Shown one piece after another: positions 37,701-45,983 of a stretch of DNA of 64,000 nucleotides (positions within the stretch are counted from its first letter, which is position 1; each line of letters starts with the position of its first letter). The position numbers were made by a program, and so were the translations under genes. Under the pieces are notes generated by a model. It did no database searches. It was not told the origin of the DNA and worked only from the letters and a program-made list of their open reading frames with translations. Source of the DNA: Oikopleura dioica (Eukaryota; Animalia; Chordata); NCBI GenBank assembly GCA_907165135.1, contig OU015566.1, forward strand, positions 8,370,001-8,434,000. Direction: 5' to 3'.

Positions 37701-39310
37701 TTGGTAGCATCATCGATTTCGTTGCTTCAAATATTGTAGCTAATGGAATCTCAATTCTCATACCTTGTTTCCAATCAACCTCAAATAGAATACTGGCATG
37801 TTTGTAAAGATCTTCAGCGAGCTCTTCATTTTCTTTTGCATTTATCGCAAAGCCGGAAGCGAGAATCGCGCGCAAAGAAAAGTTGCTCGCGAAGTCTTTC
37901 GCATTGACATCTGTCTCATCGTTTTCAGGGATAAATTTCTCATCGAAGTACTCAAATAGATCGTTGATGATCAGGCAAATTTCTTTCAAATTATTTCCAG
38001 AGAAGAATGGAGCGATCGTGCTTCTCAGTCGTTTCCATTTCGGCCCTTCGGCGACAGTTAAGAAATCGGGGCTGATTTTACCAAACAAGTAGTTCGCGCT
38101 TTAATTAATGAAAATCAGTTCATCAAATGATTTCTTACCTGGTTCTTCCTCCTGTAGTGAAGTTATGAAATTTTTTCACGCAGACTTCTTTCCAAATAAC
38201 TGGGTCGCGGATCACAAGGGCAGGTGTGACCCCAAAGATGTAGATCCCAACTGCATCCATGGGAAAATCTTTACCAAGCTGAGTTCCATGGTCGCGAAAT
38301 GTTGATCTTGTGTTACCAATATCCTTGAAAGATGGCTTTGGTCCTGGTACACCTTTTCGTTCCCAATATTTCCACTTCTGTTGAACCCATAGATACCCAA
38401 TTACAGCGGCTCCACAAAATGAGGCAAGAACAAGATACGTTTTTCTTGGTACATTATTCTGAGCGTATAAAACTGCTGATTTTAAAACGTCTTTGGACAG
38501 CTCTAAATATAAAATTAACATGATAAAAAAAATATCATTCATACCAGGGATATCTTGAAGTGTCGGAATACAATACATTTTATCTTGCTTTGAGCTGAAT
38601 TTGAACTATCTGACACGATTTATGTATCTGAAAAAATCAAATATTGAAACAAGAGTTCATCAATGTTTACGATTGGGAAGCCGGGAATGTTTCATGATGG
38701 CTCACTGAAAGTTACTGGAGAGTCATTCGATCATTAAAAATGCTCCCCTTCGAGGCAAGATAAATAACTTGATTTTTGACCGCTAAAAGCTGTAAATTTG
38801 CGCACTACGTCGGCGACATAATGGCAGAATCGGCAGCAGCGCGAGTCGATTTGCGATACCGCGACAAGATCCTTTCTGTCAACGATGTGCCAGTAGAAGA
38901 CAAGTCACATGACCAGATTGTGCAGATTGTGCAGCAAGGTCGCGTCCTTAGATTAAGAATCAAGCGATTAATGAGCTGGCAGACGACAATTGAGAAGGAC
39001 GACGCCGGATTTGGCTTTGGGGTCAGAGGAGGCGCTGATTTTGAGCTTCCGCTCTATATTCTCAGGTATAAATAACACTATTTCGAAAGAAAAAAATTCT
39101 ATTTTAAGACTTCACGAGACAACAAATGAGATAAAGTTTCGTGGAATCCGTGTTGGAGACATTCTCCTGGCCGTCAATTCCGTCAACATCGCCTCGTTCA
39201 CCCATCAACAAACTGTCGATCTCATCAAGAAAAGCTTCCCGACATTGCATCTGAGACTTCGCCGCGGAAACGGAACTGTTCCCGCCTTATCCCGAGGCTT
39301 ATCGAGATGA
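34735..39310 (+). CDS. Reduced MAGI-like tandem-PDZ scaffold; first PDZ split by an intron containing a CYP gene
   Basis: LEKFSDSFGFVVLTK (about 36720-36770) continues at about 38800 as YVGDIMAESAAARVDLRYRDKILSVND...HDQIVQIV. A second PDZ follows: GFGFGVRGGADFELPLYILR...RVGDILLAVN...FTHQQTVDLIK...LRRGNGTVP, like the last two MAGI PDZs. The 5' exons and the junction across the CYP are unresolved. Confidence 0.65.
36181..36223. repeat. Three tandem copies of a 14-bp unit
   Basis: TATTTTTTTCACTC x3. Confidence 0.8.
36822..38578 (-). CDS. Cytochrome P450 (CYP3-clan-like), nested antisense
   Basis: TM anchor followed by GVPGPKP. I-helix FAGQDTT, K-helix ETQR, PHRF and heme motif FGIGPRACPA. Short GT-AG introns. 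Confidence 0.95.
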
Positions 39311-39784
39311 TATTGTCTCTAAAAAAGAAAATATTCTGTAATGCTCAAGTATCTTCAAGTTTATTTCCATATCGTTCAATTATTTTAATGAAAAAACGCA
39401 CGCCATTTTTAGCACTTGATGTCGCCACAAGTAAACATCATGAGTTGACAAGAGCACTCACCACAAGTGCTATGTTAACGTCTGTTAATATTTAAGTAAC
39501 AGAGATGATGCTCACTTTGGTTTAGAAGTAATTTAAGAGATAAAAGACTGCACCGCGATTTGACGGTCTTCCACTTTACAAGCCTTTTAGCTCAAGAAAA
39601 ATATTAATTCGACGTCAAGTGTGTTTTTAATGGCGCTGCGCGTTTTCATTGTCGGCTCGTTCGGTATTTAAAGCAATGTACAGTTATATCAGTCGAAATT
39701 CAACAAAAATAAATATTGAAAATCGTTAAAATATGTAAGCTATTTGCTTGAATATTAAATATTCAATCGGTATTGTCCACTGGA

Positions 39785-42700
39785 TCACTGGTTCATTAGC
39801 ATTTTGAGGTTATATTTCTTCTGGTGCGAGATCCTCGGCAATGGCTGGATCTTGGCGGGGTCTTCCATCTTTCTGATGTCGATCGGTACGTGCACGCGTT
39901 CACTGTTGACTTCTAGCGCCCAGTTCGGCCAGTCGTACTTTTCCATTTCAAAGCCCAGGGTTTCTTCGTTATCAATACTTAAAAATATGTAAAATTGACT
40001 GCAAAAAGAGCGATGGACAATAGACAGCTCAGCACTTTGAAAGAAGCAGTTGGTGTGAAAAGGAGGCTCGTCAGAGCTCTAAATGTTTAATGCAGAAACA
40101 GGATGGAAACAAACTAAACCGGACACCTACTTGAATTTATCGGCGATCTCTTGAGCCAGGCACTTGAGGTTTGTAAAGTATTCCTGGTCAATATAACCCA
40201 ATTCGAGGCCAAGTTTTGCTGCGTCGACCGATTGTACGATCTAAAAGAACAATTTAAACCCAAGTGTAAATAAAGTCTTCTTTTAGGATGAAATTTAGAT
40301 AGCTGTGCTATACGAGTGAGCCAAGGTCTTAGAGGTTCATTTCTAAAGAACGCAGCTTTGCGAATATCGCAGGATTAGTTGCGTTTTTTGAGATCAGTTT
40401 CGAATTCGAAATGGCGGCTCGGGTAGCGGAATGATCACCATATCAAAAACAATACAGACATTCTTCGACAATGAGCGGTAACTTGGCCTCTTTGTTTTGC
40501 TTTCAACAAAACGTGTCTTTTGTATTATCAAATTTCGCAGAATCGTCATTTCTTCTAAGATTTTATCCCTTACCTCGCATGCTCGCTTATTTGAGTATTT
40601 TTTGATGAACATGGAGGCTTCTCGCGTCGTTAATTCAATCTCATATTGCTTCATGAAATCGATGATGTGCTTCAAGATCGGCCTCTGCATTGGATCCGGA
40701 TGCCAACAAGCCAACATCACCTTGAAGTGAAGATTAGGTCTTCTATTCAGAATCTTTTAGCAAACCTTATACAGTGTCAAATCGCATTCTAACGGCTGTC
40801 TGCAACGAACACCCTTCTCAATATTAACAGCAAGCTCTAAACAAAGGGAGTCAGTAAGAACCCGACACTTGTTGAAATTCCCTGCCAAGGAGCTATACAA
40901 ACTCCATTTTATGTGAACATAGTGGTTTTAATTTCAAGGAGCTACCTGAGACTTGAAGTTGGTCATATGGCACGTGGCCTCTAGTTAGAATTTCCCAGTA
41001 TAAAATGCCAAATTGCCACATGAGACTTTCTTTCGTGAATTTCGTCTCGTCCCGAAGCGTTTCTGGAGCAAAGCATCGCATAATTTCAAGACCGTCCTCT
41101 TAAGATAATGTATAAAGAGATTTACTAGTTATCGAGATATTTACCCCTGGTTAAATCATGCATTTTAATTTTTGCTTCATCGGAGATATTTCGATAATCA
41201 TAAATAGACCCAATTCGGACGTCTTCGTTGGAGTCGATAATGATGTTGGCAGAAATGAACTAAAGTGACAATAAGTAAGAATTCAATAAAGAATATTTAA
41301 AAAAAATTCCTGATGCCGCATCAGTGATGCGAGAAATGGTCTGATGTAAGTCGTAATTCTCAAGAACGCCGGCCGGAAGTACCGGCTAAAACCTCTATTT
41401 AGCATGCGTATTTGGTTGTTCGACTTACTTCTCGATAGACAATGTTTTCCTTGGCAAGAAGATAAGCGCAGTCCAGTAGCTGGTTGAGCCATTTTAGAGC
41501 CTAAACAAGATCTCCTTTCCAAGGACAAGTGCGTATCCACTTACCAGTCGGTATGTGACTTCCTGGTGTTTGTTGCGCAAGACATCAAGCAACGAGCCCT
41601 TTGCTCGACCACCATAAATGAAGACAGGATTCATATCCGGTGTGTAGGTGATTCCGAATAGTTTTAGGAAATATTTATTTTCGCAGATTTTAGTTGTGTA
41701 AGCTTCTTTGAAGGCACTAAAAATTAAATTTAATTATCAGAATTCAGAGTTCATCTTACCCGAATACACCAGCATCCATATCAGAAACTTTGAGCGAGTA
41801 TCCATCTTCCTGTGAAACCAAAAAGACCTTGTTTCCCTTGTAGACGGAGTTGTTGATTCGATAGCTAAAAAAATTATTCAAAAAGAGCTAAACTAAAAAT
41901 AAATATTTTCATCCGAATTGGTCAACAAGAAAGCACTCTATTTTAAATCAAAGTCCAAAAACGCTTCGCTAGCGTCATCGGAGCTCCAAAAAAGCCGCTC
42001 GGTCACGACTTAGTGGGGAAGCTTATCGCTCATATACATTTCAAAACGATATTTTCTCCCTCGGCGTTGATCACTCGTTAGTTACACAGCTTTACTGCTG
42101 GTACTTGATAATGCAACGTGCTCCTGTTATTTTCCTGTTTGATGATGAAAAAAGCAACCGTTTATCATCTCCGTAAACTTACTTTGCACCAAGTGGAGCC
42201 TTGTCGGAAGGATTTTTGGTTACGACTCTAAGCTCGGTTGGTTCAATAATTTTCGGTCGAACCATCTGAAATGGAATAGTAAAACTTGAACAAATCATTA
42301 AAATTTTACATCTTCAATCTTCGGAAGTCCACTTCTGTTCATTTCAGCCAGTTCTTCCTTGAAAACCTTCACCGCCTTACTCGCCAACTCATCATCATCC
42401 CAAACTCGTTGTCCTTGTGCGCCTTGAACCTGTAAAACTCGTTTATTCGGGGGCTTTATAGATGTCCGTTCTTACCTCAACCTCGCGGCTTGCCTTGCTG
42501 GCCCGCACTTCGGTGGGGTTGGGCGGGGCTGATCCTTTGGCTGCCTCTTTGCCCTGCGTTTCTACTTTGACCGTCTTCTCATTTTCGGTCGAGACCTTGG
42601 ACGGATTCGGCGGAGCCATCGGTAGGTCCACTTGATTTGCAAATGCGGTCAGCCTGAAAATGTCGTTCTAATTTCGCCTTCTTTATTTTTAAAAAAGGCT

Positions 42701-44399
42701 CAAACTTAAGAAGATAGAGCCTAAATTTGAAAGGTGTCACGTACTTTTGGCGAACGTAGTTTCGGACCATCCGACTCCACTTTGAATCCGGCAAGAAGAT
42801 CATCTGCGTATCAATAGGCACGAAGACTAAGTAGATAAGGACTACATCAATCCACTTGAGCCGGATGAGAGGATCAGCCAGTGCCCTGAACAGCGAGGAT
42901 AACTTTTTTTCTCGAAATAATATTTTTATCCTCTAATAAAACTAGGCTGTTTCTTCTTCTTTGTTCAAAAGAAATTGCTTCTAAAATCGTTTTGCCTAAT
43001 CGATATGATTTCTAAACCAGTGCTTAACATGATTTCAAAAACTTTTGTGGGGCCGGAAATCGTAAAAACTGCAGGTGCAGTTTTCTTCAGCTCTTCGAGA
43101 CGAGTTGAATGATGGGTCTAACTCTTGATAACTCTAAGGATTTACCGGTTTACCGGCTGGTTACCGGAAAATTCGTTGTCACCGGCCGTTTTTGTTCTAG
43201 AAGTGGTAAATAGATGTTCGACCCAGGAAACTGTTCCTTATAATCAGTTCTATTGCAGGGTAAAAGATGAAAGTTCAACTCGTCTCGAGGAGCTGAAGAA
43301 AACTGCACTTGCAGTTTTTTTACGATTTCCGGCCCCACAAAAAGTTTTTTGAAATCATCTTAACCGGTTACTCGTGCTGTTGCTAATGTTCTACTAGGAA
43401 TGTTAGCTGTTCAGGAGCTTTGCAGGAATTGCTTTAATTTTTCACGGACATATAAGGTGTATATAACACCTCGTTAACATGAGACGGACTGTTGATCCTA
43501 ACTTACGCCCATTTTATAAGATGAATAATCTGCGCAGTAACCAGCTTCACCATGACGCCGATTCCGTCCAAGGCATCCATATCGTAGCCGATCTTTTTCA
43601 TTTCTTTGTACGAATTGATGGTGAAAATGACGATCAAAAGCATATTGAAGACTTCTGCTCCAAGTGATCCCCAGACATACCCTTTGATCGGAATCGCGTA
43701 TTGAAGAGTCGTTTCCGTTCCATTGTTATCCAAGTACTCAAAGCAAAATCCATTCGAATGACCAGTTGTGGAGTCGTTCTTCCCATTGTAAGCGAGTTGC
43801 GAGGCTTGAATGATCCAGACCCACTGGTAATTGAAATAACCAAAGGCGAGCAGAAATGGAACGAGGGTGAAAATTTGAAAGGCCGACACTTTCAAGTAGA
43901 AATTTCCTCGCATGTATAGCAATCTTAATTTCAAGTTAAAAAAGTTTAAAAGGCACAGTTTAGAGTACGCCACTTGCCAGACAGTGAAACCTTAGAGCGT
44001 ATAAGTTTCGCGTTTTGTTTAGGAGTCTAGTCTTATTAAAGGAACTTACCGATAATAGAGACGATATGACCACATGCACTGAAGGAGAAGCAACGGATAA
44101 AGAGCAGCGTTTGTCAAAAAGCAGAGCTGGAATAGAAAGCAGTGAGGACCAGGGACCTTAAGCCAACCAAGAAGGATAAAGATCGGGGCACCAATGAATC
44201 CAAGCATAAAAATCAAGAGCTGAAATCTCAAGTTTGTTGGCTTGAAGACATTGTGATCAGCAGCTTGGTAGTTCGGATCTTGGTAGGGCAGAATGCATTT
44301 TGGTCGGATATAGCTCCGCCAGAGCGTGAGGTAAACTGCAGTGTTGATAAGGCATAGAATTATGATAGAGATCAGCTTAGCAATTGTACTACCGGGCAT
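39785..44399 (-). CDS. Seven-TM (GPCR-like) domain fused to a tyrosine-kinase-like pseudokinase
   Basis: Exons from 44399 to about 40404 join in frame through GT-AG introns. They give seven hydrophobic segments followed by kinase subdomains (VYKG, LKLFGIT, LLDVL, FAPETL, WQFGILYWEILTRGHVPY, MLACWHPDPMQRP). The last exons, to the stop at 39785, need non-canonical donors. Confidence 0.78.
43028..43359. mobile_element. TTAA-flanked MITE (332 bp) inside intron 2 of the 7TM-kinase gene
   Basis: About 80-bp inverted repeats (43029-43110 vs 43274-43358) with few mismatches, and TTAA at 43024-43027 and 43360-43363. Confidence 0.85.
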
Positions 44400-44896
44400 A
44401 GCATGCTCGGTTAATTGCTTTTTGTGAGTAAACAAACATTTTTTAAAATGAATTTGATGATTTTAGTTAATCTCGGTTTGTGACTCTTTCCTGAGGATCC
44501 ATCGCGAAGCTCAATGTCTCCGTTCCGGGACTATGTCATTTAAAAAATTGCCCCTCTCAAGATTCAATTCTCTTTTCGTCGAATAAAAAAATTTTTCGTT
44601 AAAAAGCACTAGAAGCGCACGGCGAGGAAAAACCAGTACAACGAGATATTTTCGTCGATCGAGTTTACAGTGCTCCAGAATTGAGCGTGCCCGATCGATT
44701 CATAATTTGTAAAAATAAGGCCCTGTCAACAATCAATATATAGAACAGTTTTTACTATTGACGTGAAATGTCTACTCGACTCCGTTATTCTCCCAGACCT
44801 TGTCTGCAATTGTCGAAAATGAAAGTCATCAATTTATTCAAGATTTCTACAGAACTGTAGCAGAGGTATTCACAAAGGCGATCAAGTTAATTCAGC

Positions 44897-45983
44897 TCAA
44901 GCATCTGGTGTAGATGATAGTTCTAAAGCAGGAGGATCAAATTTAGGTTTATAAGCCTTTTCGAGGCTACTTGATTTGCGACTTGAGCTTTGTTCGCTTG
45001 CATCTTTCGCGGATTATTTCACACAAATGCGTTTTCACCTACATTATCGCGGCAAAGTCAAGTAGAATGCAGATGAAGACAATTGCTTCTATGTGGCCTT
45101 CATTTGGCACTTTTTGGCACTGCTCGGCGTTTTCGAGAAAATCGTTTATGTCATCATTTATCATCAGCGCGTAAATATCTATAATAATTTGTCAAATAAT
45201 GACTCGAGATGTGAGGACTTTAGGATGAAATTTGAAAAAGTAACTTACTTTCAGATTCTTCTAAAAAGTCATCGTAGACAGAAAATGATCTTCCAACAAT
45301 TTTGCATTCTATCGGGCATAAATTTTCCTGATTCACACAGTTGAGCGTCACTTTATGACGGTCGTTTCCAAGTTGAAAGAGTGGTTGAAGACCCACTGCT
45401 CCAACAGGATTTCCTTCTAATAAATGTTTACTGCAAGGGGATTCTTGAGCCAATTAACCTGCTTGGAAGAAATCAGAACAACAAAATCGCAATCGCAAAA
45501 GCCTCTCACAGAATTCATAAACAATTGTCCGTCCAGTGCCAAAATTTTTGATTTCTTGACACTTTTTCAATACAAAATCAATCTGTTTCTAGTCTCAACT
45601 TACTCTTAGACACCTAGTTGCAGTGCAAATATCTTCTTTCGTCAATTTATTACATCTCGTTTGTTTGAAATTAGAAAATGCTAAAGCTAAAAATATAAAT
45701 CTCATGCGTAGTGAGTGAAATTCGCCTCACGTAGTATAAATGTCAAATTTGCTTTCACGAAGCTGTTTTATGTTTGTGAAGCCAGTCACGAAATTTTCTT
45801 TCTTTGTTTCAAGATTTCCGAAAAGATTTAGCGTTTGATCCAATGTACTCGCATTCCAGTTTGATTTATCCGAGTCCGTGTTCCCATATTCAGGAGACTG
45901 TGACGACTATACTTTTAATTGAAACTTGCTGGCATTCGAACACAATCACAGGGTAACAGTGCGATTGATTTATGAGCACTGCG
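44897..45983 (-). CDS. Hypothetical protein with Cys-containing region and a near-C-terminal hydrophobic segment (5' end unresolved)
   Basis: Four exons join in frame with GT-AG: AVLINQSHCYPVIVFEC.. / GNPVGAVGLQPLF.. / IYALMIND..AIVFICILLDFAAI / SLEKAYKPK..*. Confidence 0.5.

Follow-up and report, generated by a model that had tools for sequence, protein, structure and literature searches.

A 64,000-nt stretch of the Oikopleura dioica genome (assembly GCA_907165135.1, contig OU015566.1, positions 8,370,001 to 8,434,000 of the forward strand; hereafter the window) carries on its minus strand, at 44399–39785, a gene of 15 exons joined in frame through GT-AG introns and encoding a protein of 808 aa. 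Judged from sequence, it is very probable that seven transmembrane (7TM) segments, a linker, a tyrosine-kinase-like pseudokinase and a tail are united in this one protein. The best overall explanation, held with moderate confidence, is a single gene for a 7TM-pseudokinase protein with a scaffold role. An earlier note on this DNA had described a 7TM receptor fused to a pseudokinase; its one gene, seven segments and tyrosine-kinase-like domain were upheld, while the identity of the 7TM part as a class A GPCR (G-protein-coupled receptor) was not.

Gene structure and conservation across lineages

Genomic letters 39000–45200 were taken on the minus strand and the ten exons listed in the earlier note were spliced by script. 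All ten had correct coordinates, were bordered by AG and GT on both sides and shared a single frame, and the gene end at 39785 was also as first noted. Five exons were added to that model: exons 11, 12 and 13 (41098–40946, 40836–40766 and 40720–40574), exon 14 (40240–40131) and exon 15 (39977–39785). Introns of about 45 nt occur in the gene, in keeping with O. dioica.

Orthologues were obtained as marine metagenome DNA contigs, reached through a HMMER search of 1.84 billion representative proteins with exon 2. This search gave four matches, all of them fragments, and in the metagenome contigs exon 2 is present as open reading frames (ORFs) P0005 and P0001. Contigs L001 and L002 are near-identical haplotypes, and L015 (exons 1–13) and L017 (complete gene) represent two diverged lineages. 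In both diverged lineages the exon lengths, phases and AG/GT boundaries were the same as in the window and the ORF was intact, apart from L017, which has one additional intron and uses GC as the donor of intron 1. The proportion of synonymous differences (pS) between the window and these lineages was 0.6–0.8 (about 0.75, saturated) with amino-acid identity of 93–94 %, which fits deeply diverged cryptic O. dioica lineages in marine metagenomes. As exon lengths and ORF were kept despite saturated synonymous sites, the frame is conserved far beyond chance. The proportion of nonsynonymous differences (pN) varied along the protein, with 0.07–0.08 for TM1–6, 0.03–0.06 for the TM7 codons before the earliest ATG of exon 3, 0.18 for the linker, 0.037 for the pre-kinase segment, 0.006–0.009 for the kinase-like domain and 0.012 for the tail.

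The fusion hangs on the junction across intron 2 (43506–42886; 621 nt, phase 2). Downstream of it, exon 3 (42885–42745) encodes TM7 (aa 262–288), the conserved IFLPDS and a basic helix-8-like segment, and its earliest in-frame ATG lies at 42803–42801 (Met284). The 28 TM7 codons of exon 3 that precede Met284 showed 16 differences from L015, of which 14 were synonymous and the other two were Val/Ile exchanges (binomial P about 3e-7, assuming about 25 % synonymous sites). This purifying selection on codons that have no ATG of their own indicates that they are translated in the TM7 frame and that an upstream coding exon is needed. The intron 2 donor GC|GTAAGT and acceptor CAG|G were kept in all lineages, and the codon that the intron splits, GC|G in the window and GC|A in L015, specifies Ala in both. 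Intron 2 measured 285 nt in L001/L002, 151–188 nt in L003–L015 and 47 nt in L012, a distant homologue (55 % identity over TM5-6 and 42 % over TM7) with a phase-2 intron at the same TM6/TM7 position; the L012 and L013 contigs end early, and comparison there covers the 7TM part. No conserved alternative first exon was found within intron 2, whose sequence was not conserved across lineages, and the intron therefore hides no such exon. Together these comparisons make it highly probable, at the level of sequence, that one gene spans the 7TM and kinase-like parts.

The greater length of intron 2 in the window is due to an element of about 340 bp at 43024–43363 that resembles a miniature inverted-repeat transposable element (MITE), with long terminal inverted repeats (46-nt arms 96 % and 32-nt arms 94 % identical). 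The element was missing from the otherwise near-identical L001/L002 and is therefore a recent polymorphic insertion; no second copy was present within the window. Two further differences concern introns in L017. At L017:832–895, in the orthologue of exon 2 (near 43735 in the window), 64 additional nt resemble an intron and have GC..AG ends; they are flanked by the 10-bp direct repeat TACTTAGGCA, and their excision restores the 417-nt exon exactly. By appearance, this lineage gained the intron specifically, through an insertion or duplication that brought its own acceptor. In intron 1 (L017:597–637) the donor is CAG|GCAATT, compared with CG|GTAAGT in the window.

The gene was poorly represented in the sequence collections. 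A metagenome scan with a TM5–TM6 alignment recovered three orthologous loci only and no new paralogues, word-index searches with exons 2, 15 and 3 returned exon-sized ORFs or nothing, and no full-length protein model was present in the collection searched, which was drawn from about 15 billion proteins.

Transcript evidence

Transcripts of part of the gene were found in X1, an oligo-dT metatranscriptome with a patchy depth of 2–3× over the gene. X1 contig 4 held all of exon 3, spliced to exon 4; contig 3 held the junctions 42476/42429, 42310/42265 and 42183/41864 (exons 4-5-6-7); contig 2 held 40946/40836 and 40766/40720 (exons 11-12-13); and contig 1 spanned 39597–39862 at the 3′ end. Through the joins of exon 3 with exon 4 and of exon 4 onward to exon 7, X1 places TM7 and the beginning of the kinase-like domain on one RNA. 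The presence of a 7TM part and a kinase-fold domain in one polypeptide is thus indicated by comparative evidence together with RNA that joins exons 3 to 7. Expression of the gene appears low in the RNA data examined. Logan contig L023 was considered as a transcript and rejected as genomic, since it still contains an intron. Just 3′ of the gene, at window 39450–39725, four X6 reads shared three differences and had a loose end at 39725; they may come from a neighbouring transcript or a related copy.

The seven-helix region

Exon 1 (44399–44050; aa 1–117) opens with the start ATG at 44399–44397 and encodes TM1–TM3, with Cys87 at 44141–44139. Exon 2 (43923–43507; aa 117–256) encodes TM4, a 49-aa loop, TM5, the cytoplasmic motif GYDxxALDGIGVMVKL and TM6. 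An out-of-frame upstream ATG begins a 16-codon upstream ORF (window 44437–44387) that overlaps the main start at 44399 and ends in TAG.

Kyte–Doolittle hydropathy gave seven hydrophobic segments (approximately aa 6–27, 57–80, 88–110, 127–149, 199–219, 236–258 and 262–288), in agreement with the count given earlier for the N-terminal part. The numbers of Lys and Arg residues per loop were 5, 4 and 3 on the putative inside versus 1, 2 and 0 on the outside. The 49-aa TM4–TM5 loop contained Cys177 and two N-x-S/T sequons, both of which were retained across lineages at shifted positions, and this would fit an extracellular or luminal site for the loop. Hydropathy, the positive-inside rule and the retained sequons agree on a predicted N-out, C-in topology, and the previous placement of basic loops inside and sequons outside was in line with the charge asymmetry and the two TM4–TM5 sequons. 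The two cysteines pointed out before, Cys87 (PGPHC, just ahead of TM3) and Cys177 (GFCF), were found as described and were kept in three lineages. They occupy the positions typical of class A receptors, one atop TM3 and one in the second extracellular loop (ECL2), and may form a disulfide. The N-terminus before TM1 was only 5–15 aa in all lineages, being 8–10 aa longer in L015 and L017, and the protein therefore has no ectodomain. With seven segments and this short N-terminus it departs from a classical receptor tyrosine kinase, which has one transmembrane helix and a ligand-binding ectodomain. Differences between lineages were concentrated in the N-terminus and the TM4–TM5 loop. Among distant homologues, conservation peaked on the cytoplasmic side, in GYDxxALDGIGVMVKL (before and within TM6; invariant in the distant homologues P0002 and P0004) and in IFLPDS (after TM7).

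A GPCR identity was not established for this region. On reading of the sequence, the class A microswitches (TM2 Asp, E/DRY, CWxP and NPxxY) were absent: Asp is lacking in TM2, the end of TM3 reads WSYR and TM6 (VKLVTAQIIHLIKW) has no CWxP. TM7 had been called NPxxY-like, a comparison that did not hold up, as VPIDTQMIF has just the Pro in common with NPxxY. The TM6–TM7 loop is only about three residues long. Exons 1, 2 and 3, searched singly, matched no Pfam family at E≤1, and phmmer searches of the Protein Data Bank (PDB) with exons 1 and 2 gave zero matches to solved structures at E≤10; all Pfam, PDB and HMMER domain searches were made exon by exon, which lowers their sensitivity. The AlphaFold model of the exon 1 piece had three helices (pLDDT 70) and that of the exon 2 piece had a pLDDT of 43, with a beta-hairpin near Cys177 as a low-confidence lead. 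No significant Foldseek match came from these separate-exon models; PDB and AFDB Swiss-Prot, searched with that of exon 1, offered nothing better than E=0.3. Top scores in the ESM Atlas were 0.82 for exon 1 and 0.76 for exon 2; named matches for exon 1 leaned to GPCR-clan families, all at ≤0.77, below the useful threshold, so that they serve as leads only. An internal repeat, such as a 3+1+3 arrangement, was sought in the 7TM part and not found, and the HMMER search with exon 2 detected no 7TM homologues outside larvacean-like contigs. The class A reading proposed earlier thus found no support in the exon-wise Pfam and PDB sequence searches or in the microswitches, the topology and the TM3/ECL2 cysteine pair alone agreeing with it. 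The region is best treated as a putative orphan 7TM domain, for which a GPCR-like nature may be hypothesized.

Linker, kinase-like domain and tail

Exons 4, 5 and 6 (42653–42476, 42429–42310 and 42265–42183) encode a linker (aa 303–366) and then a conserved pre-kinase segment (aa 367–430). The linker is variable and rich in Pro, Lys and Glu, and follows the basic segment after TM7. The tyrosine-kinase-like domain (aa 431–708) is encoded by exons 7–13 (41864–40574), with exons 7, 8, 9 and 10 at 41864–41760, 41716–41545, 41500–41429 and 41259–41145. Exon 11 matched the Pfam profile PF07714 (PK_Tyr_Ser-Thr) with 36.2 bits (cut-off 23.1; E=5.4e-9), and among solved structures its best match was ROS1 (9e-9), followed by EGFR, CSK, MET, FGFR4 and INSR. 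Through this exon, both the profile and the solved kinases place the domain in the tyrosine kinase group. Weak matches were seen for exon 13 with the C-terminus of the profile (E=0.11) and for exon 8 with the N-lobe and hinge of PTK6 (E=1.4). Exon 10, which covers the end of the catalytic loop and the activation segment with DFG, matched no kinase even at E≤10.

Kinase motifs were placed manually by motif spacing. HRDxxxxN reads YREFISAN, with YRE at 41437–41429, so that Asp is replaced by Glu546 and Asn551 is retained. DFG reads SIY (41208–41200), with Ser564 in place of Asp, 13 residues past Asn551. The resulting spacing, YRE(+5)N(+13)S, is the canonical spacing of HRDxxxxN...DFG, and APE is retained at 41069–41061. 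The Gly-rich loop is degenerate (GANYRINNS), and a possible beta3 Lys455 (SLK, 41791–41789) and a possible alphaC Glu469 (FKEA) were identified. Catalysis would need a GxGxxG loop, the beta3 Lys and the Asp residues of HRD and DFG; of these, the Lys alone may persist, as Lys455. With the catalytic Asp changed to Glu (YRE), the Mg-binding Asp to Ser (SIY) and a degenerate Gly-rich loop, the domain most likely lacks phosphate transfer. The earlier description of a tyrosine-kinase-like pseudokinase behind the 7TM part was supported by the PF07714 and ROS1 matches and by the degenerate HRD and DFG motifs. The domain differed by a single residue in 278 in both lineage comparisons and, with synonymous sites saturated, is therefore a strongly constrained, non-decaying pseudokinase.

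The C-terminal tail of 100 aa, which begins in exon 14, had one amino-acid change in 100. The exon 14 donor, GTAGGT, was kept in L017, L018 and L023. Exon 15 encodes the conserved tail and ends in the stop TGA at 39787–39785; ORF fragments P0006–P0010 correspond to it. The last acceptor was set at 39978/39977 (AAG|T) by cross-lineage alignment, in which conservation starts precisely there, and the codon split at this intron, AA|T in the window and AA|C in the other lineage, specifies Asn in both. A 746-aa model with the stop TAG at 40127 and alternative last acceptors at 40078 and 39998 were rejected for the same reason, as conservation begins precisely at 39977. Pfam searches with the linker and tail exons gave no match.

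Alternative explanations

The continuity of the gene across intron 2 was weighed against an arrangement of two adjacent genes or an operon, in which exons 1–2 would encode a 256-aa six-helix protein and a soluble pseudokinase, spliced to a spliced leader (SL) at exon 3, would start from Met284. Oikopleura employs operons and SL trans-splicing, and the RNA data leave room for such an arrangement. Mapping of three O. dioica bulk RNA-seq runs gave 0–4 reads, no read or contig in the mapped runs covered the exon 2/3 junction, exons 1–2 had no coverage in X1 at its patchy 2–3× depth, and just 5–10 % of the words of exons 1–2 were present in three metatranscriptomes. These points count against a single transcript, as does the end of X1 contig 4 one letter past the exon 3 acceptor (42885). 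The letter itself failed to align to the genome. Unspliced RNA would have aligned there, as would RNA joined to the SL if the SL of Oikopleura ends in ...CAG, and the mismatch is a one-letter hint, no more, on the side of a single transcript. Reading through the exon 2 donor gives ...KWA and then an immediate stop, a point for a separate six-helix protein. However, the 28 codons before Met284 are strongly constrained in the TM7 frame without an in-frame ATG of their own, the position and phase of intron 2 are kept, even where it is 47 nt long in L012, with no conserved alternative first exon, and a start at Met284 would fall within a hydrophobic helix. Two separate genes are thus considered very improbable, and a minor SL-spliced isoform from Met284 is possible beside the single-gene product.

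Within a single gene, the seven helices could instead anchor the protein, or could have a different 7TM fold (such as that of an organelle-membrane or transporter-like protein), and simply position the pseudokinase scaffold on a membrane. This would accord with 7TM exons that match no GPCR family and have neither class A motifs nor an ectodomain, with best-conserved parts that are cytoplasmic (GYDxxALDGIG and IFLPDS) rather than extracellular, and with fold searches of the pieces that were uninformative. Yet the helices are near-invariant between lineages, more so than an anchor would require, the conserved Cys87/Cys177 pair and the sequons retained in the loop accord with an extracellular face that is structured, and the language-model matches of exon 1 lean to the GPCR clan, as leads only at ≤0.77. 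An anchor or other fold is regarded as rather unlikely. The kinase-like domain could also be an atypical active kinase, with Glu546 as the base and nucleotide bound through Lys455/Glu469 without the DFG Asp, in the manner of CASK, which is a Mg-independent atypical kinase. The placement of the Lys (SLK) and the Glu (FKEA) is plausible for beta3 and alphaC, so that nucleotide binding or atypical catalysis may be conceivable, Asn551 and APE are retained, and the conservation of the domain is extreme. Against this, HRD and DFG have both lost their Asp, the Gly-rich loop has been replaced as well and exon 10 resembles no kinase even at E≤10, and an active enzyme appears improbable.

Proposed mode of action and significance

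In the favoured explanation of a single 7TM-pseudokinase gene, the 15 exons would yield an 808-aa polytopic protein with a short extracellular N-terminus, seven orphan, appendicularian-restricted helices, a flexible linker, a cytoplasmic domain that may be derived from a receptor-type tyrosine kinase and, after it, the conserved 100-aa tail. Tethered to the membrane in this way, the pseudokinase could serve as a scaffold or as an allosteric module. Under the influence of a small ligand, a lipid or a partner protein, the 7TM part would change its conformation or cluster; the pseudokinase and tail would receive this signal and recruit or regulate active kinases or adaptors. This mechanism is offered tentatively. 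A more far-reaching and rather doubtful possibility is that a chordate independently evolved a ligand-sensing 7TM receptor that signals through a tethered dead tyrosine-kinase fold, instead of or besides G proteins. If true, it would be the first bilaterian receptor of the GPCR-tyrosine kinase (GPCR-TK) type, with an output domain that is purely an allosteric scaffold.

Fusions of 7TM and kinase domains arose several times, in oomycetes, amoebozoa, choanoflagellates and sponges, and none was found in bilaterians according to a 2025 survey (PMC12716839); a chordate example would widen the phylogenetic range of the architecture. The loss of catalytic residues, yet with one change in 278, points to a strongly constrained non-catalytic job, and the gene offers a natural case for study of the coupling between a pseudokinase and a multi-pass membrane domain. 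O. dioica is a laboratory organism whose genome is compact and for which expression data from single cells exist, so that such an example would be open to experiment. The gene also illustrates that orphan 7TM domains spread over exons escape gene catalogues, as no full-length model was found in the collection searched.

Comparison with known systems

The kinase-like domain is related to those of ROS1 and insulin-receptor-type kinases through its C-lobe exon 11, which matches ROS1 and also EGFR, CSK, MET, FGFR4 and INSR, but only alphaEF-alphaF and the C-terminal helices are recognizable in the Oikopleura domain. ROR1/2, RYK, PTK7/CCK4 and ErbB3 are conserved pseudokinase receptors that signal as scaffolds or allosteric partners. 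They resemble the Oikopleura protein in having a membrane-bound domain of the tyrosine kinase group that is conserved although catalytic residues have been lost, and CCK4 has been cited as a pseudokinase family (PMC8662651). Those receptors are single-pass with large ectodomains, whereas seven helices and next to no ectodomain are predicted for the Oikopleura protein. By analogy, scaffold signalling of the kind used by ROR, RYK, PTK7/CCK4 and ErbB3 may apply.

Bigrams in which a GPCR is joined to another domain, namely GPCR-PIPK (RpkA) and GPCR-TKL, are known from oomycetes and amoebozoa (PMC6033456, PMC5784254, PMC3206951), and GPCR-TKL/K receptors are abundant in acanthoecid choanoflagellates, such fusions having arisen repeatedly (PMC12716839). 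The Oikopleura protein shares with them a 7TM receptor-like N-terminus and a C-terminal catalytic or kinase-fold domain, an arrangement of presumably repeated, convergent origin. In the GPCR-bigrams, however, the accessory domains are lipid kinases or TKL and other Ser/Thr kinases rather than members of the tyrosine kinase group, the proteins occur in protists and GPCR signatures are present in their 7TM parts.

The closest likeness in architecture is with the GPCR-TKs, 7TM-tyrosine-kinase fusions described in choanoflagellates and sponges (Garcia De Las Bayonas et al., eLife 2025, PMC12716839). The suggestion in the earlier note of an undescribed receptor class was therefore overstated. GPCR-TKs were reported as 'not in other metazoan lineages' by a survey that took in Ciona and Branchiostoma, not Oikopleura; their 7TM parts cluster neither with known GPCR families nor with one another, and none has been functionally characterized (PMC12716839). 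No paper on a 7TM-kinase fusion in Oikopleura or tunicates was found in the literature. Among the 1.84 billion representatives searched with exon 2, the 7TM homologues were larvacean-like fragments only, in a library whose content of choanoflagellate and sponge GPCR-TKs was not established. Like the GPCR-TKs, the Oikopleura gene places a 7TM part ahead of a C-terminal tyrosine-kinase-type domain in one polypeptide of a holozoan host; unlike them, it belongs to a chordate and has degenerate kinase motifs. It is a lineage-restricted 7TM-pseudokinase fusion with an orphan 7TM family, a variant on the theme of GPCR-kinase fusions and the first candidate of this architecture in a chordate.

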